Below are positions 4,303-48,850 of a stretch of DNA of 64,000 nucleotides, one piece after another (the first letter of the stretch is position 1; each line of letters opens with the position of its first letter). A program made the position numbers and the translations under genes. The notes under the pieces were generated by a model. The model saw only the letters and a program-made list of their open reading frames with translations. It was not told the DNA's origin and made no database searches. The stretch comes from Octopus sinensis (taxonomy: Eukaryota): assembly GCF_006345805.1 (NCBI RefSeq), contig NC_042999.1, forward strand, positions 63,736,001-63,800,000. The letters are read 5' to 3'.

Positions 4303-4359
<57 letters not shown>

Positions 4360-15941: not shown

Positions 15942-15976
15942 TAAAATCATGAAGCTACTTCAGACCAAGACAAATG
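15942..15976 (+). CDS. ICE1: Coding exon 3, (D)KIMKLLQTKTN(E)
   Basis: Acceptor tttttctctttttgcag; ends at U12 donor G|ATATCCTTT; 35 nt, phase 2 to 1. Confidence 0.88.
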
Positions 15977-17465: not shown

Positions 17466-17526
17466 AGTCAGCATTTCTTAAGAAAAAGTTGCAGAATTTA
17501 GCCGAGTGTTTAAAGCAAAAAGAAAG
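17466..17526 (+). CDS. ICE1: Coding exon 4, (E)SAFLKKKLQNLAECLKQKE(R)
   Basis: Preceded by TCCTTAAC branch site and AC acceptor; donor AG|GTTTGT; 61 nt, phase 1 to 2. Confidence 0.88.
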
Positions 17527-20285: not shown

Positions 20286-20349
20286 GACTTCTCAAGAACT
20301 GCGTTCACAAGTCAACAATCTTCTCAAGGGAGCTGAACTCAATAAGAAG
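20286..20349 (+). CDS. ICE1: Coding exon 5, (R)TSQELRSQVNNLLKGAELNKK
   Basis: Acceptor tttctctttgtcag, donor AAG|GTAAAG; 64 nt, phase 2 to 0. Confidence 0.88.
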
Positions 20350-20530
20350 GTAAAGCAGACAATTCTGTATCTTTTATTCTTTTAATGGTTTCAGCCATTT
20401 GACTGTGGCCATGGTCGGGGGTACTGTTTTCTTATGCATCTTAAAGTGGATGTTTTGTTGGAACACCAAATAGTGTGTTACTTACCCTGAGAGGATCTCT
20501 ATGGATACATGTTGCATAAAAGCACACATT

Positions 20531-21742: not shown

Positions 21743-23392
21743 TTATATTTTGTGGAATTTGATTTAGTATTTCTAAATTGAATTTTTCCCTGTAAGTTAA
21801 GAATAATATTCCCTCAAATAATAATAATAATTATTATTATTATATACATATATATGCACACAACACACATACAACCATTATCTTCCATGCTGACATGGGC
21901 TGGACTAATAATAGATACTGGCTGGGCACATGAAAAATTCACAGAAAATATAAAAAATGTAAGCATTTGTAAATTGTGTGCTGGTGCCATGAGAAATGTT
22001 TCTATATTGTGACAGTTACAGAATATAGAAAGAATTGTAAAACCGATAACTATATAATCCAACCAAAATATCTCAGTTACGCAAACGTAAACAGAATTGC
22101 TATTTCACCTAAAATACATTGTACGTATTCAAAGAACCTTCTTGGTTTAGTGGTACGGAATGTTTTTCTGATATTCTTTTATTCTTTTACTTGTTTAAGT
22201 TATTTGACGGTGGCCATGCTGGAGCACTGCTGTTTAGTTGAAGAAATTGACCTCCGGACTTATTCCCTGTAAGCCTGGGGCTTATTCTATCAATCTCTTC
22301 TGCTGAACAGCGACTATAAAGTCAAAGTCAGTCAGTCAGTGATAGTAGATTCATTGTACAAGTTTTTCAGTTGGTGTCAGTGTCAGTTATGTGATACATA
22401 CGAGTTTGAGTTACCGTCAAGGTATACGTTTCAAAGTCATTGCCTTGCGGAGCTATCACCGATAGCATGATAGATGAGCCAATATTAGCAAAAACAAACC
22501 CCAGGACTTGTTTTTTTTATGTTTGATACTTATTGTTTTGGTCATTTTTGTCAAAATGCTTAGTTGCAGGGGACACCAATTGTCAGGCATTGGTGCAGGG
22601 GCAAGCACAAATGCAAAGACACACACACACATAATAGGCTTTCAAACAGTCTCTGTCTACCAAATTCGCTCACAAGGCTTTGGTCAGCCCTGGTAGAAGA
22701 TACTTACCTAAGAGGCTGTGCCATGGGATTGAACTCAGAACCACATGGTTGCAGGACAAGCTTCTTAACCACACAGTTTATCTGCACCTTGCCATGTCTT
22801 AAGAAGGGTAAAACGAGAAACAAAAACTAGGAGCTTCTCTATGGTTGCCTGATTTGCTAAAAGTAACAGATAAATCTCACTTAATTTGTATCCTACTGTT
22901 ATTTAAAAGGGAAGATACGTTAGATAATGTCTTTCTAAATATGTTCTTGTCTGAATTAAAGACAGGAGGGATATGATGGGAATGCTTTTGACCAGAGGTC
23001 TATTCAATTAGGGCTAAGCAACTAGAACTGAAGAAATTACTGTATTTTCTGGCTTATAAATCAAATTTTGGTCTACAAAATTTGTAGAGAAAAAAGGTAC
23101 GTCAACTTATACACAAAGATGTTTTGGAAGGACCAAAAAGTTTATGTGAGAGCAGCAAGATTTTGAAAGATATGATGATGTTTGAATGTTTACATCGCAT
23201 ACTACATTGACCTGTATCTTGAAAAATACAGTAGTGTTGGCCTGTGATGACCTATGATGTTGTGTTTGTATTAAAAAGGTTATTGTTTCTGATTGTCTAA
23301 TTCTTACTTGCTTTCCTACTATTTAGGTAATATTTGTTTAATTTTAACATTTAACTTCTATTCACCTTTATAAAATGCAATCCATTTTTCAG

Positions 23393-23473
23393 CTTAAAGC
23401 AGACCATGAGTTGGCTTTGACTAAGAAAGATTCAATTATTGAGGACTTGAAGCTTAAAATCTCTTACATTGAG
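23393..23473 (+). CDS. ICE1: Coding exon 6, LKADHELALTKKDSIIEDLKLKISYIE
   Basis: Acceptor ccatttttcag, donor GAG|GTAAGT; 81 nt, phase 0 to 0; coiled-coil-like. Confidence 0.9.
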
Positions 23474-24013: not shown

Positions 24014-26315
24014 GGTGGGGTTAGTAAGAAGAAGGACACTGGGCCATAGAAAAGTTGCCTCAACAAATTGTATTTGACCCATGCAAGCATGGAAGGCTGG
24101 ATGTTAAAACAATGATGGTATCTTTAAAAAGGAAGGGTACATGAAATAATTAATGTAGTATTAAATGCCCTGAGTTTGAATAAAAGACTGGATGGTTATG
24201 AATGGAATGGTTATTCAATCAGTGTTGCCCTAAAGTTAAACAATGTTCGGAACCCAAGGAAATTAGTGACGGTCTGTATTGGCAAAAAAGTATTTGTTAA
24301 TAAAAGATGTAAGGCGGTGAGCTGGCAGAAACGTTAGCATTCTGGGCAAAATGCTTATTGGTCTCTTGTTTCCACTCTTGGTCATGGAGAAAAGTTACTT
24401 TGCTTCGAAATGGTGAGCTGGCAGAAACATTAGCACGCTGGGTGAAATGCGGAGCCGTATTTCATCTGTCTCTACGTTCTGAGTTCAAATTCCGCCGAGG
24501 TCGACTTTGCCTTTCATCCTTTCGGGGTCGATAAATTAAGTACCAGATATGAACTGAGGTCGATGTAATCGACTTAATCCCTTTGTCTGTCCTTGTTTGT
24601 CCCCTCTATGTTTAGCCCCTTGTGGGCAATAAAAAAACAAAAAAGATGTATTGGTTGAAATGTTACAGTTAACCGCTCTCATTGTTGTTCGTATCTCTGC
24701 TTACTTCATTGTTTAGTAGTTAACTGTAGGAATGGTAGTGTAATAGCAGGCAACAAACTGACTGTCTTTTTAGACCATTGGAGAAAATGCCTTGCACTAT
24801 CTGTTCTGACTCTCTGCTCAGTGAGTTCAAATCCCACTGAGGGTAACTTTGTCTTCCATCCTTTTGCAGTCAGTAAAAATTGACAGTAATGGGATATCAA
24901 CTCTGAACTTATAAGAGGTTAACCCATTACCTCAAAGTATTTAAATCATTGCTCTACCAATTCTGTTGACCGTAAAAAAGTACAACTGAGTATTCTTATC
25001 ATTATCATCGTCATCATTTTATGTTCACTTTTCCATGGCTGCATGGGTCAGATGGAATTTACTGAGGTAGATTTTCTATGGCCAGATGCCCTTCTTGTTG
25101 CCAAGCTTGTTTTCAGTCAAGGTAATAATCATTTAGTCTATCATCAATGGACTATGATTCTTTTATTTGCAACATGTCAAGAAGTTCTAAAGTGCTTTCA
25201 CAGTTGACTGCAAACATACAACACTGATCATATTGATAGCTAGGCTGTTGTTTTGTTTAAAGTCAGTGAACGTGTATTGACAGAATTGCCAATTTTACCT
25301 GTTTTTTTCATTCGGTATAGACTTATCTTGGGCCGTAGACTTAATCTATTGCCTAATTGAACACCACCATAAGGTGCTTGAGTGTCTTTAACAGTGTTTA
25401 TTCCGATGCAAACATTTGGGTCAGTTCTCTTGTTTAAGGATAACTTTCCATCTTCTCAAGAGTCTCAGAGACTTTAATAAAAATAAAGGGTCATAATTGT
25501 AGCCCTTTCCTCCCTATGTGGTAAAAAATGAAAGTAAGATAGTAAAGCAGTAAAAGAATGTTATTTTGTTTCAGTCATTGGACTGTGGCCATGCTTTGGC
25601 ACCACCTTGAAGGGACCAGTCAAACAAATTGATCTTAGCACTTGGTGTTAAGTCTGGTACATATTTTAACTTTTACTGAGCTGCTAAGTTACAAGGACAT
25701 AAACAAACCAAGATTGTCAAGTGGTGGTGGGAGACAAACCAAACACAAGGATACATATATATATATACCAAATTCACTTACAGGGCATTGGTTGTTCTGG
25801 GACTGTAGTAGAAGACACTTGCCCATGGTGCTGGTGGTGGGACTGAACCTGAAACCATATGGTTGCAAAGTGAGTTTCTTAACCATACAGCCATGCCAGG
25901 AACAATTTTAATGGCTTAGTCCCAAAAGAAATTTCAGTATTCATGACCCTTTTCAAGGGCTCCAAGACTGGTGTGAGAAAGAGAGAGGTCATCTTCAGTT
26001 TTGAAATCTGGCTTGAATGCTTGCAACAAAATGTACTTTTGTAAAGGTGACCATGTCCCAGATAATGGTGTTAAACCAAGCAACAGATCAAATCCACCCC
26101 TGATAATAGAAACAGCTTTCCAGTAGGCTTCCACACTGTTTCCATTTACCAAATTTCACTCACAAGGTATTGGTTAATCTGAGGTGATGTTTATAGAAAC
26201 TTGCACATCACTCCACACCAGTATTGAAACTGAAAAGTGAACATTTGCAAAGTAAATTTCTTAACCCCAACGTTATGCTTAATTTATAACCTGACTTTTT
26301 ATTTTTCTACTTCAG

Positions 26316-26425
26316 AGTGAAAATAAGATCTTCCGTGAATCATCTGAAGCCTATCTTGCTGAAAAGAGCAAACTAAAGGAGTTGGTCTCAGTGAAGGAGC
26401 TTGCTGAGAAAAAACATTCATTAAG
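26316..26425 (+). CDS. ICE1: Coding exon 7, SENKIFRESSEAYLAEKSKLKELVSVKELAEKKHSL(S)
   Basis: Acceptor tttttctacttcag, donor AG|GTTAGT; 110 nt, phase 0 to 2. Confidence 0.9.
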
Positions 26426-27191
26426 GTTAGTTGAAGTTTTTATTGTGCATTTATTCATATTTCTGTGAATTGTATCAGGTGAAGTCGTTTATTGTTCTTC
26501 GCTTCTGATGACATAACTTTGGTCATACTCTCTCTCTCTCACACACACACACCTCTACCACCACCAAGTACATACATCTTAATCACTCTTATTGTTCAAA
26601 CTACATTAACCACATATCAACCACTAAGCCAACAAGGGAGCCTCTACACAGTTACTCAGCCTTCAAGAAACAGCAATCAAATCTCCCTCATATCACATCA
26701 TCTTAGAAAAAAAAGGAAGACCATTGGATAATGTGTTCTGTGATACACTAAACCTGAAAAAAAAAAGGAAAAACAACTGGGTGGCTATGGTTGGAATTTA
26801 TATTTTGATCATAGGTTAACTCATCATCATCATCACCATTGTCTTTTTAATGTCCATTTTCCCATGCTTACTGGATGAGAAGGAATGTTTTGAGTTAGAT
26901 TTTTCTATGGCCAGATTCCCTTTCTGTTGCTAGCCATTACATATTTCGAAGCAACATTTGAGGAAGATTTGGTTGCAGTTTCTAGTGTATCATGTTACCC
27001 TGTATATGCTTCCTTGGTGGCTCAAAACTGTTTTATAATGGACATCTGGTGTAAAACTGTAAAGAATTGGGATTCAGAATGACAGGATATTCAATAAAAT
27101 GAATGTTTTGATATTACGGATTAAAAATATATTGTTGTTCTGTATGTTCTATTGCTGATCATAATAAAAATAATTGCGATTTCTGTTGCAG

Positions 27192-27229
27192 CATTGAGAA
27201 GAAAGACAAGCGGATTAAAGTGTTAACAC
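27192..27229 (+). CDS. ICE1: Coding exon 8, (S)IEKKDKRIKVLT(Q)
   Basis: Acceptor tttctgttgcag, donor AC|GTGAGT; 38 nt, phase 2 to 1. Confidence 0.88.
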
Positions 27230-27439
27230 GTGAGTTTATAATTTTTTAATATTCCTTTTTGTTTTCCTTTTCTTTTTCATTATATGCTAGTGCTATCAGT
27301 TTTGAATTTTAACCCTTACAGAACTGGAATTGTCAATAAGTAATTTTTCTAAAGTACACTGAGAGACAGTAGTTCTGATTGTCATGCCATTTTCTATCCT
27401 TATATAATGCTAGGTAGCCATGTATCTTCTGTGCTACTT

Positions 27440-27830
27440 TGTCTCCAACAATTCGGTGCTACACCAGTGCAGAATCACCTTCCTTAGACAAGTCATCCTA
27501 ACAAGACGTCTGCGTTGGCTGGGTCATGCCCTCCATTGTCAACCAGGGTAATTCATCTACAAAGCAATTGCCCCAGCTCCCCTTCAGGATTGGCAAAAGT
27601 GATGTGGTGGACAACGAAAAACCTGGCTGATGACAGTCAAGGCTGATCTGGAACCCAACCTAGGCCCCCATATCTATGGCGTTTGCCGCTGGAATAGGGA
27701 GTGGTTGGAGATCACGCGATTGTTAGCCTCAAATCGCCAGGTCTGGTCGGCATTTGTGAGAGATGCAGCATTGAGGATGAATGAAGCCAGCTCAACCCAC
27801 CCCAGATGAATGCTGTCCCAAGTCAAGTCA
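27440..27830 (+). mobile_element. 3' end of a second RTE-like LINE with a (CAAGT)n tail
   Basis: Encodes RRLRWLGHAL...RKTWL.TVKADLE...RWNREWLEI...SNRQVWSAFVRDA with stops; ends caagtcaagtca. Confidence 0.7.
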
Positions 27831-29581
27831 TGTATCTTCTGTCCAGCAGGAAACCTTTTTCTGTCTATCATATTTTCACCTCCCAACAACACCAGGCATA
27901 AACCTGCCTCCTCCTCAGTGGAATAGTCTCTTTTCTCTTAACATGGCAGCCTCACTTGTACAAGTAGCACAAAAATGTATCCAGAACACTCTGTAAAGTA
28001 GTTGGCATTAATTGGAGCATACATTGAAACTTGGCACATTCTTTTATTTCGGAACCTATCAAACCATCCAACCCATACCAACATGGATGGATGTTGGCAT
28101 GGGTTGGATGCTGCTGGTGATGACAAACCTTCAGTTTTAAATATAAATTTTTGTGCCTTTTTATGAGACCACAGTGACATGCTTGAACACCAATAAGCAT
28201 AATTAAACAGCTAAACTGGTCAATGTTTAATCAGCATCCATTTACAAAAGACTTTCCACATGATAGAAAGAAAGAAATTACGATAATTATCTGTAAAGAT
28301 AATTATTAATTACTGTGAAGATAATTATTAATTAGTGTTATAGAGAAGTACAAATATACTGTTAATGTGGATATGAAATGTGAAAATATTAGTGAGTAAA
28401 CTTCTCTTCGTGTGTGTTTGTGTGTGATCCTCATCATTTAATGTCTGTTTTTCATGCTTGCTTGGGTTGGGTGGTTTGACAGGATCTGAAAACACAGGGC
28501 CACGCCAAATTCCAATGTCATCTTTGGTATGGATTTTACTGCTGGATGCCCTTCCTAAAGCCAACACACTTTGCATAGTGTACAGGGTGTTTTTTTTCCA
28601 TGTCACTGATACTATTAAGATTGCCAAGTGACTAGCAAGACAAGAAGAAAGAACAGGCAGAATGAAAAAGGAAAAAAAGCTCGCTTGACTAAATGGGGTG
28701 TAGGATGTATTTGAGGAGATATGATGGTTCAATACCAGATATTTGTCATACACACACACACACACACACACACATAACATGGCCTTGCTTGGTTGGGTCT
28801 ACATGTGTTACTTTGAAATCATAATTCCATAAAATTTGTTTATGGGGAGAAAAATATTGAGAAATATCAATAGATGTGTGAGTGAGAAAGAAACGAGGAG
28901 GGAGGTTTTGGTATTTAGCAATTTCTTTTTAAACCGAAAATGTTTCTCTCAAATGCTTAGTGAAAAAAGAAGAAAAAAAAATGGCCAAAATCACATTGGA
29001 CTGAGGTGGTGAGGGGTTGGCAGGAGTGAAAAAAATTTTTTTCCAAAAAGATGCCTTCCATGATTCTGAAGACTTTGATGAAAAACAATGGAAAAAAGTC
29101 CGTCAAAATGGAGAAATTCCAACTTATGTGGACTGTCTGATCTGAAACTCCATTTTCCAGAAACTCCTCCCCATTGCCCCCTTCTAAAAATTTTGCTTAC
29201 AAATTTCTTTGTAACCATAATCTACACTGTTTGAAAGGTATTTGTATAAAATTTCATTAAAAAATACCTATTTTCCAGAATGTCATGAGGGGACAAATGT
29301 CAAGTCTTGTGAAGTTTCCAAAATTCCTCTCCCCAACCCCCTCAGAAAAATTTTCCAACAAATCTTTGCACACACCCAATCTACAGGAAAAAAGCAATTA
29401 TTTGGAGAAAGTTTTGTTAAAAAGTATCCATTTTTCTGGAAGTTATGAGGCAACAAAGTAGGTGGGGTATTAAACTATAGTTATGACTTTTTTCAATAAA
29501 AGTTAACGTTAATGGATTAACATTAACTTCCATTATATTTTCAAAGAATTAACGGATTAACAAAGTTAACTTTTCGATTAA

Positions 29582-29803
29582 CCCTTTCGTTACAGAACCT
29601 GGCTGAAACTGCCTCTAGCTCAGTAGTACAAATGTCTTATTTGCATAAGTTTTGAATTAAAATCTTCCACCAAACCTTAGTCACAATTTATGTTCCTAAC
29701 ACTAGCTTAATAATAACTGAGTTATTTTACTAAATTCCTTGTTATATTTAAAATAATTGAAAGAAACACAGAGCATCTCAAAGTAAATACGGTAACGAAA
29801 GGG
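29582..29803 (+). mobile_element. TTAA-specific (piggyBac-type) MITE, family 1, intact
   Basis: Perfect 12-bp TIR CCCTTTCGTTAC / GTAACGAAAGGG with TTAA on both sides. Confidence 0.88.
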
Positions 29804-30372
29804 TTAATGGTATCCACCTCTGTATCTATGTATGTGCATATTTATCTGCCATTTCCTTCAGTATAACATCCCTTCAGTATAACTACTTTGTCATTTATGC
29901 TTCTCGTACTTCTCATGTCTTGATGATTCTGTCTCTCTTACTTTGTGTGTGTGTGTAGCATTTCTTTACTGCTTTGATTTATCCCTCTTTAATTCTCTCT
30001 CCATATGATGTAAAGTATAACGGGAGAAATCAGTCAACCCACATTTATGTTGGTTATGATATCTGTGTGTGTGTGTGTTTGTGTTACCCATACAGGTGAG
30101 TGAATTGAAAGTACCCGTATGAGTAACACCTCAAATAAAACTGCTTAGGATTGTCAACCTTCAGATTTGAACGTGTTGCAATTTATTTAATATAAATCAA
30201 CTGAATGCATGTTATTGCTATATCAAAGGACACTGGGACACTTAACCGACAGAAACACATGTTGGAGTGGAATATGAAGAAAATACTTTAATAAGTAAAT
30301 TTGGAAGATGTATTATTTTCCATTCTTCATTATGATACCTTAATTATACACACACACACACACATATATCAC

Positions 30373-30672
30373 AATGGCTCAGTGGTTAGAGCAGTGGACT
30401 TGTGGTTGTAAGATCTCAGTTTTGATTCTCAGACCGGGCGTTGTGAGTGTTTATTGAGTGAAAACACTTAAAGCTCCACGAGGCTCCGGCAGGGGGTGGT
30501 GGCGATCCCTGCTGTGCTCTTTCGCCACAACTTTCTTTCACTCTTTCTTCTGTTGGCCTGCTCGCTTAGCCAGCGGGGTGGCGTCATTTGAAGGCTAAAA
30601 CAATGTGAAGCGCATTGTGACCAGCGATGTGTAGCAACATCTGATAGCCTGGTCGGTCACAGTGATCACGGT
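30373..30672 (+). mobile_element. tRNA-derived SINE family D; related heads on the minus strand near 17983-18229 and 36499-36799
   Basis: Head GGCTCAGTGGTTAGAG...GATTC; the segment to about 30560 is the reverse complement of 36600-36790. Confidence 0.65.
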
Positions 30673-30826
30673 AATATATATATGCATTCAATCATATTTG
30701 AGTTGTGTTGTGCATGTTTGTTCAAGTGTCTATGTTGATACTGCTTGTAAAACAATGCTCTATGTTCATGTCCTTTGTAAATTAGCAGTTTGAAAAAAGA
30801 TTGATTAAAATAAGAGCCAGACTTGA

Positions 30827-31045
30827 CCCATTAGCATTTAAACTGGCCATATCCAGCCAAGGTATTCTACCTATTTAACGTTCAGACTGACCAGATCTTG
30901 CCTCTCACACCTACCCTACTATGTCATTCTAAAAATAAGCATTCACATATCGAAATCACAAGGATATGAGATAATGTGTGATTAATTCAAAACATTGTGA
31001 ATAAATAAGCATTACATTTGACAGAGTAATCTGAATGCTAAAGGG
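30827..31045 (+). mobile_element. TTAA-type MITE, family 2 (CCCTTTAGCAT ends), degenerate
   Basis: Ends CCCATTAGCATT / AATGCTAAAGGG; internal sequence is the reverse complement of 51598-51792. Confidence 0.7.
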
Positions 31046-31242
31046 TTCCAAATGATCAACTAAAATCCTTCAAAGCTTTGCCTCAGGAAGACCAAAGTGT
31101 TATAACTGAAACATGTAAGTGAGGAAAAGAGAATACAAGAAAATAAAGCTTGATAAATTAAAAGAAAGTAAATTTATGAAAATGAAGATAAATCCTGTAT
31201 TTACATTAACCTTCTTAATATCAACAAATCCTCTTTTGAGAA

Positions 31243-31248
31243 TTTATT
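31243..31248 (-). terminator. Candidate polyadenylation signal AATAAA of the nested Ig gene
   Basis: AATAAA on the minus strand about 115 nt after the stop, in AT-rich sequence where chance matches are common. Confidence 0.45.
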
Positions 31249-31362
31249 TTCTGTAACTTTCAAATATTGTTTTTTTTTTTTCTTTCTATGAATGCCATTG
31301 TCCTAACAATTTAGTAATTAGTGTTTTTCCCCCTCCATGTCTTTCTATTTGTCTCAGGGCAT

Positions 31363-31863
31363 TCAAATATTTTCATTTAAATCCGTGGGTGCTTGTTGAT
31401 ATTTCCTTCTATAGGACCTGATAAATCTAACAATATAACAAGTAAAAATTATAAGCAATAAAGAACAATTTATACCGACAATGATTAAACCTTCTTTAAA
31501 ATAGTCATATTTGATGTAAATGACCACATTAACCGTGGTATTCATCTTAGTTTCCACCTGCATGCATGTGTAGGAACCAGAATCCTGAACAGTAGCATTT
31601 CTTATGAATAATGTGTTTGAGATTTGCTCAATATGATTGCTGTCATATTCATCGACCTTGGTACCATTTGGTAAAAGCCAGGTAATGTTTCCTTTGTGTG
31701 GGAGGCTGCATTCGTATTTTAAAGATTTCCCTTGTTCTTGAGGATGAGGAAATGGGTCTATTTTTAGGTCCTGTGAATGAGTTTCAGTGGCTTCACTTGC
31801 CTTGAAGACAATGGTAATGATGACAATACATAAGACGATCAGTGGTCTTGAATCTGTAGACAT
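31363..31863 (-). CDS. Nested antisense gene: 166-aa type I membrane protein with one Ig (I-set-like) domain
   Basis: Signal peptide MSTDSRPLIVLCIVIITIVFKASEA; Ig motifs YEC, ITWLLPNG, LFIRNATVQDSGSYTC; four N-glycosylation sequons (NIT, NGT, NAT, NTT); TM GLIIVGINCSLLLIIFTCYIV; basic stop-transfer RFIRSYRRK. Acceptor tattttcag lies 5 nt before the ATG. Confidence 0.9.
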   Translation of the reverse strand: MSTDSRPLIVLCIVIITIVFKASEATETHSQDLKIDPFPHPQEQGKSLKYECSLPHKGNITWLLPNGTKVDEYDSNHIEQISNTLFIRNATVQDSGSYTCMQVETKMNTTVNVVIYIKYDYFKEGLIIVGINCSLLLIIFTCYIVRFIRSYRRKYQQAPTDLNENI

Positions 31864-32769
31864 TATTCCTGAAAAATATATCGTACAAGAATTTAACAAA
31901 TAAGGTTTTACTAACAGTTTGATATGTGTGTGTGTGTGTGTGTATCATAGATATATATATGTATCATTATATTATATAATAATTTACATGTAATTAGGCA
32001 TATATATCATCATTATAGTTTTATGTCCATCTTCCATGGGTGGGATGGGTTCACAAGAGCCAGCCAGCCAGAAGCCTGCACGAGACTTCTGTGACTGTTT
32101 TGGCAGGATTTTTACAGCTGGATGTCCTTCCTAACACCAACATCATCATCATCATCATCATCATCAAAATGGACTTAGTGCTTTTTACGTGCCACAAGCA
32201 CAGGCGAGGTCAGTTTTGGTAAGGTTTTTACAGCTGGATGCCCTTCTGAGCACCAATCACTTTATAGTGTGGACTAGGTGCTTTTTAAGTGGTACCTGCA
32301 CTGACAGGGTCACCAAGTACTTGCAGGACAAAAAAATCGCTTTTGAGAGGGAAAGGGGCATTGGAGAAGGTGATCTTTTGTCAGATGATGAAAGGTTAGA
32401 GTGAGACAGAGAGACAGAAACATGTGTCTTGCTGCAGAGGAAGTACAAGGTTACTGGCTGGTGAGAGAGAGAGAGAGAGATCAGGAATGAAGACAGAAAC
32501 AGGTGTGCTACCGCAAATGAAATACATGGTTATCCAACCTGAGGGAAGTCAGGAGAAAGAGAGAGTGGGAGACAGCAGGATAAAGATGGTGGCAAAATGC
32601 TGGGCATACTCACAAGAGATGGGGGATCAGAATATAAATGGAATGGCTGAGTAAAGGAAGAGAAAGATATAGATGGTGGCAAGTGCCAGGGCATACCCTT
32701 GAGATTCAATTGCCATAATATAAGTGGCAGGATATTGTGAAAGAAGTGTGATTAAAGAGTGTGGAGTGG

Positions 32770-32808
<39 letters not shown>

Positions 32809-34170
32809 GAGCAAAACACCCCCCCTCCAATGGACGAGGCTGATGTACTTGTGCGTACAAATGCACGTTCCCATGGCTTTATTGATCACATTCTTATCTG
32901 GAATCGATTTTTGTAATTTTTTCAAGACTTATACTCACCCTGATACCTTTGGTATCTACATATCAAATTTGAGCACAATCGGATGGAGGATGCCCGAGAT
33001 CCTGGAAGACACACACACACAGACAGACAGAATGGATTTTATATAAGATATATATGTGTCGGTGGCACATAAAAAACACCTTCCGAGCGTGGCCGTCTGC
33101 CAGCCTCGTCTGGCACCTGTGTCGGTGGCACATAAAATCACCCACTACACTCTCGGAGTGGTTGGCGTTAGGAAGGGCATCCAGCTGTAGAAACACTGCC
33201 AGATCTGACTGGCCTGGTGTAGCCTTCGGGCTTGCCAGACCCCAGTTGAACCGTCCAACCCATGCTAGCATGGAAAGTGGACGTTAAACGATGATGATGA
33301 TGATATATATATATATTATATCCTGACTCTCCATTGTTTATGACAACAAGTGTTCCAGTTGATCTGATCAATGGAACAGCCTACTTGTGAAATTAAGATG
33401 TAAATGCCTGAGAACTCCACAGACACACGTCCCCTTAACGTAGTTCTCAGGAAGATTCAGCATGACAAGGAGTATGACTAGGCTGGCCCTTTGAATTACA
33501 GGAACATTTTTACTTTTTACCAGCTGAGAGGACTGGAGGAACGTGAAATAAAGTTTTTGCTCAAATGTACAGCATGCTGCCAGGAATTGAACTCCTGACC
33601 TTCTGAATACCCTAACTACTAAGCAATGCACCTTCACTATATCCTACATCCAATTATATAATTATCTATAGGAGAGTATTGTAGTTCGCTGGAAGCATTG
33701 TGTATTGTTTGTGAAATATAACATGTCTTGAATGGCACAACAATGCAGAGTGGACTATAATAACTGTTATAATTTAATTATTAATAGTCTGATATAATAA
33801 TCATCATCATCATCGTTTAACGTCCACTTTCCATGCTGGCATGGGTTGGACGATTTGACTGAGGTCTCGCGAACCAGATGGCTGCACCAGACTCCAATCT
33901 GATTGGGCAGAGTTTCTACAGCTAGAGGCCCTTCCTAATGCCAATCACTCCGAGAGTGTAGTGAGTGCTTTTATGTGCCACTGACAAGAAGGCCAGTTAG
34001 GCGGTACTGGCAGCGGCCACACTCAAATGGTGCTTTTTATGTGCCACCTGCACACGAGCCAATCCTGTGGCACTGGCAATTTTGGAATATAAAAATTCCT
34101 TCTTCAAATATTGCTAGGAATTGATCGAGTCACTGCTGTAATTGTTTTTTTTCTTTCTCTTTTATAATAC

Positions 34171-34523
34171 ACTAGCACTAGCGTTGCTGGGTCATAGTGC
34201 TAGTGCATGCATATACAGCTGCGTGCGTGCGCACATACACGCGAGTACTGTCCAAATCTCTGACCAATCACATATGCTGGCATTCAATTGGCGTATCAAG
34301 TTTCGGGCATTTTGATTGGGTTTTGGATAGAAATTTCACAAAAAAGTCACTTCTATTGTTTTTTTAATGGCTTTGCAGGGTGATTGGGGAAATGTAAATA
34401 TTTGCATGACCACCCTTGGACGGTTTTGAATGACCATAGAAAGTGCGAGCCCTCTAACTAAAAAATTGTGGATTTGTATAAAGGACACACACACAGACAT
34501 TTTGCTGTTTACATATAGAGAGA
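34171..34523 (+). mobile_element. Non-autonomous element resembling Helentron-associated (HINE/DINE-1-like) repeats; second copy about 49764-50321
   Basis: 5' hairpin ACTAGCACTA...TAGTGCTAGT with GCGTTGC core; about 190-nt 3' block shared with the second copy, ending CACA..ACATTTTGC.GTTTA.A.ATAGAGA. Classification is tentative. Confidence 0.4.
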
Positions 34524-34693
34524 TGAGCATGTTCCAGAAATGAACTGACATGCATCCAGCTGAAGCTAAATAATATATTGATTGCTAATTTCCCGCCTGC
34601 TATTAATTTGGGGCCCTAGTCTGTCCATGAGGATAGCTTCTAAAATGAAAATGCAAATTTGTATTGTAAATTATATTTATCAATTCCCCCACC

Positions 34694-34729
<36 letters not shown>

Positions 34730-35851
34730 TGAAATCAATCAATTATCTGCATGACTAGGTAATTAAGTTGGTAATCACTCATTGTAGGAACTCATTTGTT
34801 GTCCAATAGTGATTTCTAACGTGTATTGATCACAAACTTTGGAGAAGGGTAGGACCACTAAGATTCCTTCACCCTCATATTTAGCTACTTGTTATTTCAT
34901 TGACCCAGTGTGCTGGTGGCACGTAAAAAGCACCATCCATATGTGGCCAATGCCAGCGCCACCTTGACTGGCTTCCGTGTCAGTGGCACGTAAAAACCAC
35001 CAACTGATCATGGCCATTGCCAGCCTTCCCTGGCACCTGTGCCAGTGGCACATAAAAAGCATCATCTGTACATGGTCGATGCCAGCACCACCTTGACTGG
35101 CTTCTGTGCCGGTGGCACGTAAAAAGCACCAACCGATTGTGACCATTGCCAGCCTTCCCTGGCACCTATGCCGGTGGCACGCAAAAAGCATCCACTGTAC
35201 TCACGGAGTGGTTGGCGTTAGGAAGGGCATCCAGCTGTAGAAACAATGCCAGATCAGACTGGAGCCTGGTGCAGCCTTCTGGCTTTCCAGACCCCGGTTG
35301 AACCGTCCAACCTATGCTAGCATGGAAAAACGGACGTTAAACGATCATGATGATGATGAATAAAAGAAAGGGAAAATCAAGTTTGATGGGATTTGAACTC
35401 AGGAAGCGAAATGGCTGAACCAATTATCACATATTATTTTCTCCATTGCTTTATCCCTTCTTCCATCAAGCATCTAATAGTAGCAAACATACTGTGTGAC
35501 TTTTTAAGAAGGTTTAGTGTAGAGGTTATACTAATCCAGTTATGTTGGCCTATGACAGGTATTTGACTATAATTAGTCATTATAGCTATAATTTATTAGA
35601 GTAGGTAAATTCTGGGAAGATAAAGAAAGAAAACTAATCTTGTTTATCATTCAGCTTTATCTAGTTATTTAATTATTTATTTATTTTTCATCACAGCTTA
35701 TTAGATTAGTTACTAATGTTATTTAACCCCAGGTCACCCCTGATCCAGTAGACCTATGAACATTCCACTATTTTCCTTTATATATATATTATGGAGATGT
35801 ACTCGCATAGCAAGTAATTTGATCTGAGATCGTGTGCTGTGTTTATATATA

Positions 35852-35901
<50 letters not shown>

Positions 35902-37562
35902 GACTGGAGTCTGGTGCAGCCTTCCAGCTTGCCAACCCTGGTCAAACCATCCAACCCATGCCAGTATGGACAGTGGACACTAAATGAAGATGATGACTGT
36001 TTTATCCAATATTTCTTTTTTATAAAATGGTCGAGTGTGCTTTAAAGGTTAAAAAATCACATTGTGGCTCCTTCATTGGCTCACTAATAGAGTAATTTAG
36101 TAGAGAATTAATTAAAAGAAATTGTTGTAATTATATTATTGATAGCTGTGCATTGATGATTTAAAATGATGAACTTCTAATAAAACTTTTATCAGTGAAC
36201 AAGAGAGCACCACTCTTAAAACTTCTCTCTTATGGCATGGAAGACTATGATAAACAGAAGAACACTGAGGACAGAGCCATGGTGCCCCTCTCTTCTTCAG
36301 TTTTGAACTTGTCACTGTATTCATTGGTAACTCTCGCCTTGTTGAGAGCATGTCTTTATATGGTTTGAATGGCCTTCTGAAGCCAAGCCATTCATCTACT
36401 ACTTACCTTAACACCACCCCCTACAGAACATGGAACTACACACACACATACACACATGCACATAAATAATACTTAAACTATGATCATTTATTTTTATTTA
36501 TGCACCCTTTTCAAGCCTAGCCAGGCTCATGGGCCCAGATTCCCGGTTTCTATGGCGTATGTGTTCCCCCAGCTGGACGGGATGCCAGTCCATCGCAGCA
36601 TCACTCAAGAAACGGGAAGAAAGAGTGAGAGAAAGTTGGGGCGAAAGAGTACAACAGGGGTCGCCTCCCCTCCCTGCCAGAGCCTCGTGGAGCTTTAGGT
36701 GTTTTCGCTCAATAAATACACACAACGCCCGGTCTGGGAATCAAAACCGCGATCCGTCGACTGCGAGTCCGCTGCCCTAACCACTGGGCCATTGTACCTC
36801 CAATCTATGATCATTAGTCTGACAAACGATATTTTGTTGGATTAATGATTATGGATTAAATATCTTATTCATTCTTAGACTTATTCTATGTTTATTCTAA
36901 GTCACTGGAGATAATTTGTTTTGAACTTGTTACCCCCTGGAATGTGTGTTTGTGTGTGTGTGTTTGTTTCAAGATACATCTCACAGATACTCTGGAATGG
37001 GATCATATGAGGTTTGGAGTCTTTCACTGTCAGACCCCTTTGTCCAGTTCATCCAATCATCCTATCATTCAGGTAGCAACAAGCCTTGGGCATTCTTCTT
37101 TATTCACTATTAAGTAGGACTTCTCTCAGCAGCTTCAGTGATGGAACACACTGCTGTTTTGTCTTTGCTGCACCAATATATTTCAAATTTAAATTATATA
37201 CTTGCATGAATAGTCGAATGGTGTGAATGGTGTTTTTTTTTTTTTTGACACTGTTTGAATCTCAATCACTTGTTGATAAACCAGTGCTCTTATTTAGTTG
37301 CTATGTAATCCCTTTGGCATTTAGCTCAACGCATTTTGTCCAACCGAATATTGTTTCTAAATGTAGGCACAAGGTCAGCAATTTCAGGGGAAGGGATAAC
37401 ACTGACCCAAGTGTTCAACTGGTATTTTATTTTATCAACTCCAAAAGGATGAATGGCAATGTCAACCCTGGTGGTATTTGAATTCAGAATGTTAGGTCAG
37501 AAGAGATGCCACTAAGCATTTCTTCCAGTGCAGTAACAATTTTACCAGCTTGCTACCTTATA

Positions 37563-37972
37563 GGCATAGGAGTGGCTGTGTGGTAAGTACCTTGCTTACC
37601 AACCACATGGTTCTGGGTTCATTCCCACTGCGTGGCACCTTGGGCAAGTGTCTTCTACTATAATCTCGGGCCGACCAAAGCCTTGTGAGTGGATTTGGTA
37701 GATGGAAACTGAAAGAAGCCCGTCGTATATATGTATATATATATATATATATATGTATGTTTGTGTGTCTGTGTTTGTTCCCCCACCGTTGCTTGACAAC
37801 CAATGGTGGTGTGTTTACATCCCCGTAACTTAGCAGTTTGGCAAAAGCGACCGATAGAATAAGTACTAGGCTTACAAAGAATAATTCCTGGGGTCAGTTT
37901 GCTCAACTAAAGGTGGTGCTCCAGCATGGCCACAGTCAAATGACTGAAAAAACTAAAAGAGTAAAAGAGTTA
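37563..37972 (+). mobile_element. tRNA-derived SINE family C with internal (TA)n; other copies near 16147-16531, 39504-39892, 15490-15720, 48050-48230 (-)
   Basis: Head GGAGTGGCTGTGTGGTAAG...GGTTC..TCCC (A/B-box-like); tail CCAGCATGGCC.CAGTCAAATGACTGAAAC. Confidence 0.8.
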
Positions 37973-38224
37973 TGTCCAACCAAATATTGAACTAAACTAA
38001 AGACTAAATAAACTAGATAAACTAAAAGCTAGCTTTAAGAACTAGGGCTTTTAACTTTTTCAATACTGTAATATCCACAGTATAAGTCACCTTACTGAGA
38101 TATTCTGATTTTAACTTAGTCAATATATAAAGCCTTTATATTTTCCCACTTTTGTATAATCCAGTCACTTTGGTTTAAAGTGGACTACAACACAATTTTG
38201 TGCTTTTGGTGAAAAGATGTTTAA

Positions 38225-38444
38225 CATTTTCATTACTGTATTTATTTTGAGATGTTCTGTGTTTCTTTCAATTACGTTAAATATAACAAAGAATTTAGTA
38301 AAATAACTTAGCTATCATTCAGCTAGTGTTAGTAACATAAATTGCGGCTAAAGTTTGGTGGAAGATTTGAATTCAAAACTTATGAAAACAAAACATTTGT
38401 ACTCAAAGCCAGAGCTGGTTTCAGCCGAGTTGGTAACGAAAGGG
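38225..38444 (-). mobile_element. TTAA-specific MITE, family 1, inverted copy
   Basis: Reverse-complement similarity to 29582-29803; TTAA flanks; one TIR degenerate. Confidence 0.82.
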
Positions 38445-39434
38445 TTAATGTTAAATTAAAATTGATATTATGGGAGAATTAACTCCTAAAATATTTGTGT
38501 AATGTCAAATACTTCTTAAAGTTGAAAGTTAAAACCCCAGTTAGTAGCAACATGTTATTTAATATTATCTGTCTGATACACATTACAAGACAGTCTTTTG
38601 TATTTTGATATAAATATAATTCTCTACTCTGAAATTTGACTAAAGTTAACTACAGTAGTGAAAAGGTTAATGTCAGTTGTAAGAAAGAGTGAAGTTGATA
38701 TTTGCTAGTAGCAATTTATCCTGAACATTGCCGCCATTAATGCTTTATGACTGTTTTTCAATACTGATGTGGGTTGAATAGGTCTATTTTTTAGCACAGT
38801 ATCTCACCACTTTTCAAGGTCCTTCATTATTTGATGCACAAAATAGCAGAGAAAAAGACAATCATTAATCTTGTGTATATCTTACTCTGGTCAATATTAC
38901 AGATGTTGAGCAGTAATTCTGATCCTGTCAAACAGGTTTTTTTAACTCAAACACAAGGGATCTTATTTTATAATAAGATATATTAATAAGAGTGTATATA
39001 TATGTTTATCAATTTGTGTTGCTGGATTCCTGATGTGAAATGAGTTAATGGACATGAGTTAAAGTAAGAACAGTAATAAACAAATAAAAAACAAATATAT
39101 AGTGTATTTATTTGTTAAAATTTTTTTTTTTTAAATGACATCCCAAAATACAAGTGTATATATAAATATATATATATATATATAGCATGGAAAGCGGACG
39201 TTAAATGATGATGATATATATAAATATATATATAAATGTAAAAATTCTATAATTATGAGTATAATTATAATTATGATTCAGCAAAAATTTGCTTCACCAC
39301 ATACCGAAATTTAGAAATAGCAGTTAAAACTAACTATTTCACTACCATAAGACAATCTTCCAGACAGCAATACTCGACAACTCACACAAGTAAAGAGATA
39401 TTACTGTCATTATATATATACATACACACTTGTG

Positions 39435-39468
<34 letters not shown>

Positions 39469-39684
39469 CGTGCATGGGCTTTGTAAAGTTTCTATCTACC
39501 AAATTGACTGTGGCCATGCTGGAGCACTGCCTTTAGTCAAGCAAATCGACCCTTGGATTTATTCTTTGTAAGCCTAGTACTTATTCTATCGGTCTCTTTT
39601 GCCAAACTGCTAAGTTACGGGGATGTAAACACACCAGCATTGGTTGTCCAGCGATGTTGGGGGGATAAACACAGACACACAAAC

Positions 39685-39732
<48 letters not shown>

Positions 39733-39984
39733 CGACGGGCTTCTTTCAGTTTCTGTCTACCAAATCCACTCACAAGGCTTTGGTTGGCCCGAGGTTATAG
39801 TAGAAGACACTTGCTCAAGGTGCCATGCAGTGGGACTGAGCCTGGAACCATGTGGTTGGTAAGCAATTACTTGCCACACAGCCACTCCTACACCAAAACT
39901 CTGTACAGACAGATTTTTTTTACATGCAGTACCTTCCTATGCATAGAGCGATGGCTAACCATTAACAAACACACACACACACAC

Positions 39985-40163
39985 TATATATATATATATA
40001 TAAAAGATATGTACATATATAGCATTGAAAACATATATAATATATATATTATAGTAGTTGGTTATAACAGAAATAATTGAGATTTTTTAAAATATAAATA
40101 CATTTGTGCAGATGAAAAGAATTGCCTGATAGAAAAAAAAGCATGCATCACCTACAGCTTATA

Positions 40164-40201
<38 letters not shown>

Positions 40202-41038
40202 AAATGATATTGTGTATCAACATATCACGGTTCCCAACTTTTGAATTCCAATAGCAAGGTAAAAGTCAAGCTAAGGCTACAGCGGAAGACACTTGTGTGA
40301 AATGCCATGCAATGAAATTGAACTGGAACCATGCAGGTACAAAACAAACTTCTTAATCAATGACAGACTTTCTGTCTAGTCACTGAAACTGCTAGAAATA
40401 GCACCAAATTTCCATTAAGTTACTGTATCAAAAGAAAATGTGACAGACTGGATATAGTGTTGTCCAAGGGGTACTATTGTTGAAATTAAATTGGGATGGT
40501 CATAACTGGAATGCCCATGGTCATAGGTGTGCTTGATAAGGGCTGGCTTGATGGTGAGCAGCAACAATAACAACAACAACAAATAACCAATGTGTGACAT
40601 ATTAGAATGGAGACTTCACAACTGACTGACTTACCAATGGCTTTCCTCCTTCTTACTCACTCATTCAACTGGTATTTAACTTTGATGCAAGGTGGTCTAC
40701 TCTTTACATAATTTTCATGGATTTGTGTGTGTGTGTGTCGGTGAGAGTGTGCAAGGTGGTGTTGTGCTTATTCTCTTTCCCTCACACCCTGCTGTCAGCT
40801 GACTAAACAGCGTAAACACAAATAATATATATAATTGTCTTCATTCTAGCTGACTTTATCTAGCAACTGTCATTTACATAATGAACTTAACTATTGTGTG
40901 ATATAATATGTTTACCTTCATACACACACACATTTGTGTGTGTGTGTGTGTTTTTACTGATTGTCTGTGCCTTTGTAATTGTCTATGCAATGTGTGTGTG
41001 TGTATGTATATATATATATATATATATATGCATCTCTA

Positions 41039-41088
<50 letters not shown>

Positions 41089-41241
41089 GTACATATATAG
41101 CATTGAAAACATATATAATATATATATTATAGTAGTTGGTTATAACAGAAATAATTGAGATTTTTTAAAATATAAATACATTTGTGCAGATGAAAAGAAT
41201 TGCCTGATAGAAAAAAAAGCATGCATCACCTACAGCTTATA

Positions 41242-41279
<38 letters not shown>

Positions 41280-42116
41280 AAATGATATTGTGTATCAACA
41301 TATCACGGTTCCCAACTTTTGAATTCCAATAGCAAGGTAAAAGTCAAGCTAAGGCTACAGCGGAAGACACTTGTGTGAAATGCCATGCAATGAAATTGAA
41401 CCTGGAACCATGCAGGTACAAAACAAACTTCTTAATCAATGACAGACTTTCTGTCTAGTCACTGAAACTGCTAGAAATAGCACCAAATTTCCATTAAGTT
41501 ACTGTATCAAAAGAAAATGTGACAGACTGGATATAGTGTTGTCCAAGGGGTACTATTGTTGAAATTAAATTGGGATGGTCATAACTGGAATGCCCATGGT
41601 CATAGGTGTGCTTGATAAGGGCTGGCTTGATGGTGAGCAGCAACAATAACAACAACAACAAATAACCAATGTGTGACATATTAGAATGGAGACTTCACAA
41701 CTGACTGACTTACCAATGGCTTTCCTCCTTCTTACTCACTCATTCAACTGGTATTTAACTTTGATGCAAGGTGGTCTACTCTTTACATAATTTTCATGGA
41801 TTTGTGTGTGTGTGTGTCGGTGAGAGTGTGCAAGGTGGTGTTGTGCTTATTCTCTTTCCCTCACACCCTGCTGTCAGCTGACTAAACAGCGTAAACACAA
41901 ATAATATATATAATTGTCTTCATTCTAGCTGACTTTATCTAGCAACTGTCATTTACATAATGAACTTAACTATTGTGTGATATAATATGTTTACCTTCAT
42001 ACACACACACATTTGTGTGTGTGTGTGTGTGTTTTTACTGATTGTCTGTGCCTTTGTAATTGTCTATGCAATGTGTGTGTGTGTATGTATATATATATAT
42101 ATATATATATATGCAT
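39985..42116 (+). repeat. Tandem duplication of about 1.08 kb (39985-41033 and 41053-42116)
   Basis: Offset 1078-1081 nt; identical 61-aa spurious ORFs at 40415 and 41494; both ends lie in (TA)n. Confidence 0.95.
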
Positions 42117-45100: not shown

Positions 45101-45576
45101 TCCATGCTTATTTTCACACTTTCTTCGTTTTTTTTTTTTACCTTCTCCATGAACATTGTTTTGCATTTTCTTGTATAGAGGATTCTTGATAAATTCTAAG
45201 ATCTTCTGTTGCTTTGAACAATAGTAGGTCATGTCTAGCCCTTGCTATATTTAAAAAAAATTATTTTTTAAAAATTAATAAAGATGGGGAATGCTATATG
45301 ATGAAGTAGGTAGCTAGAAGGAAAACTCTGATGCAACACCTGCGACTTCGTTTACGTGTTATAATGTAGAATAGTTATTTTTAATAAGCAAATGCATGTG
45401 AAGTGAGATTGACACACTCAGCTGAAAAACCTTGGAAGTGGTCCTCCACCATAGCCTCAGTCCAGATTACTGAAACAAATAAAAGATTGAGAAAATGCTG
45501 ATGAAATTTGTATCGTTAAATTCTTGCTAACTAGTTTTATCCTTTTCTTTCTTTCTTTCTTTATTTATTTCAACAG

Positions 45577-45659
45577 AAAATTTTGAAGGCAATAAACAAA
45601 TGTTGTTAGAACTGAGAGAAAAATTCAACTCACTGCAAAAAGAAATGCACAAGCTAAAG
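45577..45659 (+). CDS. ICE1: Coding exon 9, (Q)NFEGNKQMLLELREKFNSLQKEMHKLK
   Basis: Long pyrimidine tract then caacag; donor AAG|GTATGT; 83 nt, phase 1 to 0; joins exon 8 in frame across an 18.3-kb intron. Confidence 0.88.
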
Positions 45660-48588: not shown

Positions 48589-48628
48589 GAACAAAATAAA
48601 AGTTTCCCTCCAGTCTTCCAAGATACTG
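48589..48628 (+). CDS. ICE1: Coding exon 10, EQNKSFPPVFQDT(A)
   Basis: Acceptor ttcttcttctttacag, donor TG|GTATGT; 40 nt, phase 0 to 1. Confidence 0.85.
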
Positions 48629-48850
48629 GTATGTATATTGTTATAATAACTTATAAATTCCACCAGATGTAGATCTATTTTTTTGTTTATATTCATATAC
48701 ATTTTGTAAATTTACATGTATAAAATAACTTTTGTTTGTTTATTTTTACTTGATTTTTTTTTATTTTGCTAAAATGTGGCAGGCTGTGATGTGGTGGTGG
48801 TGAGCAGGGTAGAGTATTATGTTAATTTGAAATTTTCTCTTTATTTAAAG

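Follow-up and report, generated by a model that had tools for sequence, protein, structure and literature searches.

A nested gene on the opposite strand within an ICE1-like gene of Octopus sinensis and its place in an unnamed family of single-immunoglobulin membrane proteins

The stretch of DNA examined here (the window) comprises 64,000 nucleotides (nt) of the octopus Octopus sinensis (contig NC_042999.1, positions 63,736,001 to 63,800,000, forward strand). It carries a small gene that lies antisense within an intron of a larger host gene. The host looks like the orthologue of ICE1, the little elongation complex subunit 1, a scaffold of small nuclear RNA (snRNA) transcription. The nested gene, as judged from sequence comparison, is the octopod member of an unnamed family of single-immunoglobulin (Ig) transmembrane (TM) proteins that occurs at least in molluscs, annelids and nemerteans. 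We consider it highly probable that these elements belong together, that is, that an uncharacterised Ig-TM gene has been nested antisense in an ICE1 intron since an ancestral stage and that its product would act by association within the membrane.

The nested open reading frame (ORF) is the longest one in the host intron once the ORFs of repeats and transposons are set aside. It is read without interruption from ATG to TGA on the minus strand, and its translated product is MSTDSRPLIVLCIVIITIVFKASEATETHSQDLKIDPFPHPQEQGKSLKYECSLPHKGNITWLLPNGTKVDEYDSNHIEQISNTLFIRNATVQDSGSYTCMQVETKMNTTVNVVIYIKYDYFKEGLIIVGINCSLLLIIFTCYIVRFIRSYRRKYQQAPTDLNENI. A hydrophobic N-terminal signal, MSTDSRPLIVLCIVIITIVFKASEA, is followed by TE, and the signal peptide is probably cleaved after SEA25, as predicted from the sequence. 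The ectodomain shows the Ig hallmarks C52, W62 and DSGSYTC100 and four N-glycosylation sequons (N59, N66, N89 and N108); a fifth sequon, N132-C-S, falls within the TM helix and is not usable. The TM segment spans approximately residues 125–148. The cytoplasmic tail RSYRRKYQQAPTDLNENI is identical across three Octopus-type sequences, and its YRRKYQQA stretch is Octopus-specific, the Argonauta counterpart being CRRKYHLA. A first-pass annotation, made from the nucleotide letters, had described a complete protein of 166 amino acids (aa) in one coding exon, with a signal peptide, one Ig domain, four sequons, a TM helix, a 21-residue tail containing YRRKYQQA and an acceptor just before the ATG, antisense in a host intron of about 18 kb. 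This description holds except for the length of the tail, which turned out to be 18 residues, and the interval given for the gene, 31243–31871, does span it from the polyadenylation signal to the acceptor.

The Ig assignment is clear in Pfam. The nested protein is matched by Ig_3 with 34.0 bits (cut-off 30, E 4e-8), by ig with 26.2 bits (cut-off 21.8) and by I-set with 23.9 bits (cut-off 23.7); V-set scores 20.2 bits, under its cut-off of 26. Ig_3 is matched by 55 of the 55 aligned family members described below, and C52, W62 and C100 are invariant in that alignment. A usable AlphaFold2 (AF2) model was obtained only from the 55-sequence alignment, with a mean predicted local distance difference test score (pLDDT) of 91.4 and values of 93–98 over the Ig stretch, as compared to a pLDDT of 48 from a three-sequence alignment. 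The model reveals one beta-sandwich (strands 34–113) that passes, almost without a stalk, into a continuous helix (residues 121–157). The TM helix contains a buried Asn (N132) and a cytosol-proximal Cys (C142). According to the model, the nested protein is a type I membrane glycoprotein with a single I-set Ig domain that hugs the membrane. The best Foldseek matches in the PDB are NCAM Ig1 and the Ig domains of LINGO-1, NGL, AMIGO and SALM5, with a titin Ig also among the top ones, at E values from 1e-7 to 1e-5 and a target-normalised TM-score of at most 0.74. A PDB search with the full family profile returned generic Ig domains only, and one with a profile of the TM segment (A3) returned only insignificant hydrophobic matches (SERINC3 and the TM segments of ACE2 and DPP6). 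Hemotin and other TM-only Pfam matches were discarded as noise, since they are weak and appear in 1–3 of the 55 members. A likeness of YDYFKEGLII to the FXYD motif, which we take to be PFxYDYxxLRxGGL, was considered and dropped because the spacing is off by three residues and the family consensus reads MPxYF.

The family emerged when 1.84 billion representative proteins were scanned with HMMER, which gave 336 matches at E ≤ 0.001. These are of two kinds: giant multi-Ig proteins that match over the Ig core only and small proteins that match nearly end to end. Among the best 150 of the 336 matches there are dozens of proteins of 121–240 aa, nearly all covering approximately the full query length. 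The small family proteins align to query residues of about 10–160 with E values from 1e-25 to 1e-8. Fifty-five small matches were read, and 52 of them were aligned with three octopus sequences (alignment A2, n = 55). At least 52 proteins of 145–211 aa share a collinear layout of signal peptide, one Ig domain, juxtamembrane motif, TM helix and short basic tail, with the family consensus ...WxxPNGT...GTLxI...DxGxYTC...NxT..L.VYxMPxYFxEGMIIxxINxxLxxxFxxC..RR. The signature of the family is its juxtamembrane/TM segment, VYxMPxYFxEGMIIxxINxxLxxxFxxC followed by basic residues, which is covered by no Pfam family and no PDB chain. The hallmarks Y121, E124-G125, N132, L135, F139 and C142 are all present in the nested protein (YDYFKEGLIIVGINCSLLLIIFTC), where K-Y replaces the MP ahead of the signature Tyr. 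Large multi-Ig matches that reach toward the TM segment (P0031, P0082, P0138 and P0151) were set aside, the signature being absent from them.

The named members of the family come from O. bimaculoides (two paralogues), the gastropod Littorina saxatilis, the nemertean Tubulanus polymorphus and the annelid Owenia fusiformis, and they are labelled only as 'uncharacterized' or 'Ig-like domain-containing'. Other members were found in Logan, ENA and JGI contigs. A profile search of a word-indexed database produced no further named relatives, and a limited library search found no publication on such a family of single-Ig TM proteins in lophotrochozoans. The coding sequence (CDS) is a single exon in all members read at the DNA level (four phyla-level lineages). 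The first-pass annotation could not assign a family; the protein now has a place in a widespread single-Ig TM family, which itself is still unnamed and uncharacterised. The second O. bimaculoides paralogue, P0014 (A0A0L8GZU8), has 170 aa and 33% identity, and its juxtamembrane motif has degenerated to KPMYSYYLEELAMIGFNCC.

Column statistics were computed on 53 family sequences, with the two close octopus orthologues left out. Conservation, taken as the frequency of the most common residue per column and averaged by region, falls from 0.67 for the juxtamembrane stretch through 0.54 (TM segment) and 0.43 (Ig core) to 0.27 (tail). Two positions, Y121 and L135, never vary, at least 91% of the family sequences keep N132, F139 and C142, and the juxtamembrane/TM block is nearly identical in the three Octopus-type sequences. 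Across phyla, the tail preserves only its basic character. Because conservation is higher in the juxtamembrane/TM segment than in the Ig core, and because the tail has no signalling motif common to the phyla, a mode of action through specific intramembrane association of this segment is favoured. The Ig domain, predicted to be heavily N-glycosylated and to sit directly on the membrane, would supply the extracellular contact, and C142 may be palmitoylated. A conserved polar TM residue in a helix that is conserved above the ectodomain favours two roles: the protein could serve a multi-pass membrane protein as accessory (beta-type) subunit or co-receptor, or it could form an obligate TM-mediated oligomer. 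Of these, we favour the role of accessory subunit or co-receptor. Elsewhere, conservation of the TM segment over the ectodomain has been a pointer to overlooked accessory subunits in transporters and channels.

The same pattern bears on two other functional proposals. The protein might be a free-standing adhesion or recognition molecule that works through its Ig face, homo- or heterophilically, like the smallest Ig cell adhesion molecules (IgCAMs), in which case nothing more than homodimerisation or targeting to membrane rafts would lie behind the conserved TM segment. We regard this, the main rival, as possible but doubtful. The nearest folds are indeed the neural adhesion Ig domains listed above, and IgCAMs typically show both such a conserved glycosylation pattern and a DxGxYxC face; however, the Ig core is less conserved than the juxtamembrane/TM segment, a single membrane-hugging Ig domain reaches only about 4 nm off the bilayer, and the tail lacks a conserved cytoskeletal or PDZ motif. 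An immune-type activating receptor of the TREM, NKp or CD3 kind, which signals via a TM adaptor, would share the layout of a small Ig domain, a short tail and a polar TM residue, and the Ig models of CD3 epsilon/delta do appear below threshold (Ig_5 with E 0.008; Ig_4/Ig_5 in 5 of 55 members). This proposal is quite improbable, since those model matches stay under the cut-offs, the polar TM residue is Asn and not Lys, Arg or Asp, and the tail RSYRRKYQQAPTDLNENI has no immunoreceptor tyrosine-based activation or inhibition motif (ITAM/ITIM), lacking YxxL/I(x6-8)YxxL/I. In addition, the family has 1–2 copies per genome, is under purifying selection and is not rapidly expanding.

The comparison of octopods argues that the nested ORF is a real gene under purifying selection. 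The O. bimaculoides orthologue A0A0L8I3M4 has 166 aa and is 89% identical to the nested protein, and octopod Logan contigs (L001 and L002; protein P0002) encode a 166-aa homologue that is 83% identical. The reading frame is disrupted in none of the orthologues, including the 167-aa one of Argonauta. The collinearity of L001 and L002 with the window extends beyond the ORF in both directions; these contigs are therefore genomic and give no splicing information. As compared to L001, the CDS shows 48 differences per 501 nt and zero indels, and the NG86 ratio of non-synonymous to synonymous substitution rates (dN/dS) is 0.078/0.208 = 0.37, with 0.017/0.354 for the TM segment plus tail. As compared to Argonauta, the protein has 58% aa identity, with dN of 0.30, dS of 1.64 (saturated) and dN/dS of about 0.18; for the TM segment plus tail the values are 0.14/1.80. 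In both comparisons the regional dN/dS of the TM segment plus tail is 0.05–0.08. A blastn search with window positions 26000–46000 against the Argonauta hians locus (L005) gave two single-copy matches only, host exon 6, which immediately precedes the intron, and the nested ORF (31326–31776, 71.6% identity), the remaining matches being multi-copy repeats; the nested ORF is the sole single-copy conserved block within the host intron between Octopus and Argonauta. An intact ORF in relatives, dN/dS and nesting in other molluscs had been named at the first pass as ways of checking the gene, and all three came out in its favour: the ORF is intact in O. bimaculoides, the Logan octopod and Argonauta, dN/dS is well below 1, and the Argonauta gene sits in the orthologous intron. 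Another family member in a Logan contig (L009) was considered as transcript evidence and proved unusable, having no terminal poly(A).

An acceptor-like sequence, tatatttttcag, ends at 31869, 5 nt ahead of the ATG. L001 and Argonauta L005 have the ttttcag at the same distance from the ATG, and its conserved spacing in Argonauta is indirect support for a spliced 5′ untranslated region (UTR) with an upstream non-coding exon, the acceptor itself being putative. The 5′ exon and the promoter were not located: upstream of the ATG, Octopus and Argonauta share no single-copy block. On the other side, an AATAAA hexamer lies 115 nt past the stop codon, L001 has AATAAA at the matching offset of +112, and the 3′ UTR is alignable with L001 over approximately 255 nt beyond the stop. 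Microsatellites of the (AC)n and (GAT)n types occupy 31925–31945 and 32140–32165, 60–300 nt upstream of the acceptor, and L001 breaks at the corresponding AT/AC repeat. The acceptor could also mean that the ORF closes a longer gene on the minus strand as its last coding exon, joined in frame to coding exons upstream, and that the actual protein is larger. There is no in-frame stop from the acceptor to the ATG, and the acceptor is kept in Argonauta. It is nevertheless very unlikely: a canonical signal peptide directly follows the ATG, at least 52 homologues of 145–211 aa from several phyla begin at the equivalent Met, the independent gene models of O. bimaculoides and Argonauta begin there as well, and Octopus and Argonauta share no conserved single-copy sequence upstream.

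The host protein of O. sinensis (P0163) has 1972 aa, and the 1241-codon exon of the window is 97% identical to it. RefSeq names it 'probable serine/threonine-protein kinase DDB_G0282963', and the O. bimaculoides orthologue is named 'putative uncharacterized protein DDB_G0282133'. These 'kinase' and DDB_G names look like low-complexity artefacts; the sole Pfam signal in the host is a C-terminal ICE1_C (PF25817), and there is no kinase domain. Among precomputed domain matches, ICE1_C is recorded for the host in O. bimaculoides, in Tubulanus (E ≤ 1e-5) and, faintly, in Owenia. The hosts of octopus, Argonauta, Tubulanus and Owenia have a common architecture of approximately 2,000–2,400 aa, in which an N-terminal region with a coiled coil and an LKQKII-type motif is combined with a giant central exon that is disordered; there may be a likeness to the N-terminus of human ICE1. 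No relative of the host protein was found in the PDB. In Argonauta (L005), the neighbours of the probable ICE1 orthologue are a gene for an HSCB-like co-chaperone at 1028–3145 (−) and Med11 at 55135–58064 (+).

The nesting is found again in other animals. In Argonauta hians L005 (host P0165), the 167-aa Ig gene lies on the minus strand, opposite to the host, between host exons 13229–13342 and 30293–30379, which are the counterparts of ~26316–26429 and 45577–45659 of the window. The gene is thus in the orthologous intron; the counterpart of exon 7 was not mapped there. In Tubulanus (L007), the homologue is on the plus strand inside a minus-strand gene (1–14251 and beyond) for a 2332-aa ICE1_C protein, and in Owenia (L008) it is likewise on the plus strand inside a minus-strand gene (1–16744 and beyond) for a protein of 2391 aa. 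Searching the Tubulanus, Owenia, Littorina and ENA loci by tblastn with the octopus ICE1 N-terminal exons was too insensitive, and motif landmarks were used. On the host strand their order is identical in the four taxa: an LKxKII(S/Q)(S/T) exon, the antisense Ig gene, an acidic (L/V)SP(L/I)P exon and, last, a giant exon with 1200–1600 open codons. Since four taxa from three phyla keep this order, the ICE1 nesting appears to be at least as old as the common ancestor of molluscs, annelids and nemerteans. These phyla diverged in the Cambrian or earlier. A fifth locus with an Ig gene antisense in ICE1, the ENA contig L004, carries ELNYTALKEKIISTE (the exon-2 motif) on the opposite strand, 8 kb host-upstream of its Ig gene, and the Littorina homologue lies within an opposite-strand gene model. 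A limited library search found no publication tying ICE1 to a nested gene.

The first-pass annotation had left the origin between a retrogene and an old nested gene, and the second option is the one that the Argonauta, nemertean and annelid loci bear out. A recent retrogene, or a functionless chance ORF, would agree with an intronless CDS in a repeat-rich, AT-rich intron. Yet dN/dS is well below 1 across octopods with dS saturated against Argonauta, the same nesting is seen in other phyla, and no A-tract follows the AATAAA; such an origin is extremely unlikely. The retrogene alternative was dropped because a single-exon CDS is the norm of the family, seen in every member read, and because the position is ancient.

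Several points weigh against the joint reading of an ancestral ICE1/Ig-TM pair with an intramembrane mode of action. The octopod copies depart from xMPxYF (IKYDYF or ARYDYS), which could mean an altered function. The idea of an accessory subunit is inferred from the conservation pattern only, and the TM-only profile A3 retrieves no relative among the solved complexes of the PDB. The hosts of Littorina, L003 and L010 are not identifiable within 10 kb, and the orthology of the exact intron across phyla is deduced from landmarks, not from aligned host proteins. In the cephalopod hosts, ICE1_C scores 24.9 bits in P0163 (E 2e-5), 25.4 in P0164 and 22.3 in P0165, just short of the Pfam gathering cut-off of 27. 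Finally, the nested protein is absent from a collection of 15 billion proteins. Exact-sequence look-ups likewise gave no match for the nested protein, for P0001 or for the host of O. sinensis. The source species probably lacks a coding annotation for the nested gene, which seems to be missing from the protein set of that species; the 'kinase' name of the host there is misleading, as the evidence points to an ICE1 orthologue.

Table 1. Coordinates of the nested gene, of the host gene in the window and of the landmarks in four taxa (host exons from tblastn and exact peptide matches of P0163).
Sequence	Feature	Position	Strand	Remark
Window	Complete CDS of nested gene	31363–31863	−	ATG...TGA, 166 codons + stop, single exon without intron
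Window	Signal peptide, aa 1–25 (predicted)	31789–31863	−	−3/−1 rule; AF2 helix 6–22; least conserved part of the family
Window	Single I-set/C2-type Ig domain, aa ~33–118	31510–31767	−	Pfam and AF2
Window	Juxtamembrane motif and TM helix, aa 119–148, YDYFKEGLIIVGINCSLLLIIFTCYIVRFI	31420–31509	−	Family hallmark
Window	Cytoplasmic tail RSYRRKYQQAPTDLNENI and stop codon	31363–31419	−	18 residues
Window	Polypyrimidine tract and cag acceptor (31869–31880), then GAATA (5-nt 5′ UTR)	31864–31880	−	Acceptor-like signal
Window	3′ UTR to AATAAA hexamer	31243–31362	−	AATAAA at 31243–31248
Window	Host gene, part in window	1397–63215	+	
Window	Host coding exon	1397–1453	+	
Window	Host coding exon	14622–14684	+	
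Window	Host coding exon	17462–17527	+	
Window	Host coding exon	20284–20355	+	
Window	Host coding exon	23390–23473	+	
Window	Host coding exon 6	~26316–26429	+	
Window	Host coding exon 7	27192–27229	+	aa 157/158–167 of P0163; donor gt at 27230
Window	Host intron with nested gene	27230–45576	+	18,347 nt
Window	Host coding exon 8	45577–45659	+	aa 168–196 of P0163; acceptor caacag before
Window	Host coding exon	~48592–48630	+	
Window	Host coding exon	48850–48966	+	
Window	Host giant exon	52544–56266	+	1241 open codons
Window	Host coding exon	59906–60262	+	
Window	Host coding exon	61981–62034	+	
Window	Host coding exon	63084–63215	+	
Octopus (window)	Early-exon motif SLLKSLKDKIISS; Ig gene; SP(L/I)P; giant exon	14658; 31363–31863; 48886; 52544–56266		
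Argonauta (L005)	Early-exon motif as in Octopus; Ig gene; SP(L/I)P; giant exon	8072; 17081–17584; 32997; 34476–38513		
Tubulanus (L007)	Early-exon motif LNFKTLKQKIISTE; Ig gene; SP(L/I)P; giant exon	13802; 10001–10603; 6718; 6353–2661		
Owenia (L008)	Early-exon motif YIMLKQKIIQTE; Ig gene; SP(L/I)P; giant exon	~15600; 10001–10579; 6507; 4739–3		

The intron that holds the nested gene is the seventh between coding exons, or the eighth if a non-coding first exon exists, and the nested ORF lies 4 kb from its 5′ end (Table 1). The same intron contains interspersed repeats of approximately 150 nt (28427–28565, 33145–33311, 33774–33961 and 35204–35369), which match many sites in the Argonauta hians locus at 70–76% identity and belong to an old SINE-like family shared by octopods. 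Host intron 1 carries a compound TA-rich microsatellite of ~3.7 kb (~1490–5220) built of TATA/TATG/TACA-type units; its GC content is 10–20% in 2-kb bins, and it gives rise to artefactual long 'YIYIYI' ORFs on both strands. A pogo/Tigger-type transposase with CENP-B_N, HTH_Tnp_Tc5 and DDE_1 lies in the same intron at 10999–12540 (−) as two ORFs in one frame, separated by one in-frame stop at 11737–11739. ORF fragments at 51876–52148, 47365–47700 and 12628–13843, all on the minus strand, resemble decayed transposable elements; by eye they look like the C-terminus of a mariner-type transposase and pieces of reverse transcriptase, and Pfam gives none at E ≤ 0.01. The giant exon contains in-frame tandem repeats at ~54000–54580 and ~55000–55400 (+), with many copies of the 8-aa ETKFNN(S/P), as well as three units of about 38 aa (DIPLKSVNNSDRIETSTNSDDPN.QIFPVKLKELQSE). 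O. bimaculoides aligns poorly over these repeats, and the repeat region appears to be species-variable.

As to why the pair has stayed together, three ideas compete: entrapment, shared regulation and antisense coupling. We take entrapment in the intron of an essential gene as the default explanation: the nesting would be a frozen arrangement, a guest in a host intron being hard to move without damage to the host. Regulatory or antisense coupling is possible, and a shared regulatory constraint may reinforce the nesting. A far-reaching version of this proposal can be formulated as well. It holds that ICE1 and the single-Ig gene have been an obligatorily coupled unit since the mollusc-annelid-nemertean ancestor or earlier, that transcription of the guest is linked to ICE1 expression, and that the guest is an essential TM accessory subunit of a spiralian channel, pump or receptor. 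This version is speculative and, in our opinion, rather unlikely to be right in full.

Among known membrane proteins, basigin, neuroplastin and embigin are Ig-TM accessory subunits of monocarboxylate transporters (MCT) and of plasma membrane calcium pumps (PMCA). They offer a functional analogy, being small type I members of the Ig superfamily (IgSF) with a short tail, in which conservation is highest in the TM segment; this segment carries a conserved polar residue and mediates the contact with a multi-pass partner. They differ in that the polar TM residue is Glu vs. Asn in the family described here and in that the major isoforms have 2–3 Ig domains. The TM profile A3 retrieves no PDB chain of basigin, neuroplastin or embigin even at E ≤ 10, and membership in that group was rejected, as there is neither a TM Glu nor a detectable sequence relationship. 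The neural IgCAM and leucine-rich repeat (LRR)-Ig proteins (NCAM Ig1, LINGO-1, NGL, AMIGO) share the Cys-Trp-Cys core and DxGxYxC, whereas they are multi-domain, have 20–28% identity confined to the generic Ig core and lack the juxtamembrane/TM signature. The present family is a widespread one of animal membrane proteins, all labelled 'uncharacterized', that are more conserved in the TM segment than in the ectodomain.

Nested pairs comparable to this one have been described. LRRTM genes are nested in alpha-catenin introns of jawed vertebrates (PMC3933685). As in the ICE1 pair, the gene of a type I membrane protein lies antisense in a large conserved intron of a host that encodes an intracellular protein; unlike it, that arrangement is vertebrate-specific and much younger, and the guest has an LRR ectodomain and about 500 aa. 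TIMP lies antisense in a synapsin intron, a nesting conserved from cnidarians to human (PMC2825198). Here too a small guest of the secretory pathway occupies the opposite strand in an intron of a functionally unrelated host and has kept the same relative position across phyla over hundreds of millions of years. The two pairs differ in that TIMP has five exons while the ICE1-nested CDS has a single one, in that the families differ, and in their known range, which is Mollusca, Annelida and Nemertea for the ICE1 nesting and cnidarians to human for synapsin-TIMP. The ICE1 pair shows what defines such a nested pair: the guest is within one host intron, and the position is kept in four taxa of three phyla, as judged by landmarks. 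Conserved nested pairs on opposite strands are already known, and it is the ICE1/Ig-TM pair of host and guest and the IgSF family that are new. Cross-phylum nested pairs are few, with SYN-TIMP as the classic case, and the ICE1 pair provides an independent test of how such arrangements persist.

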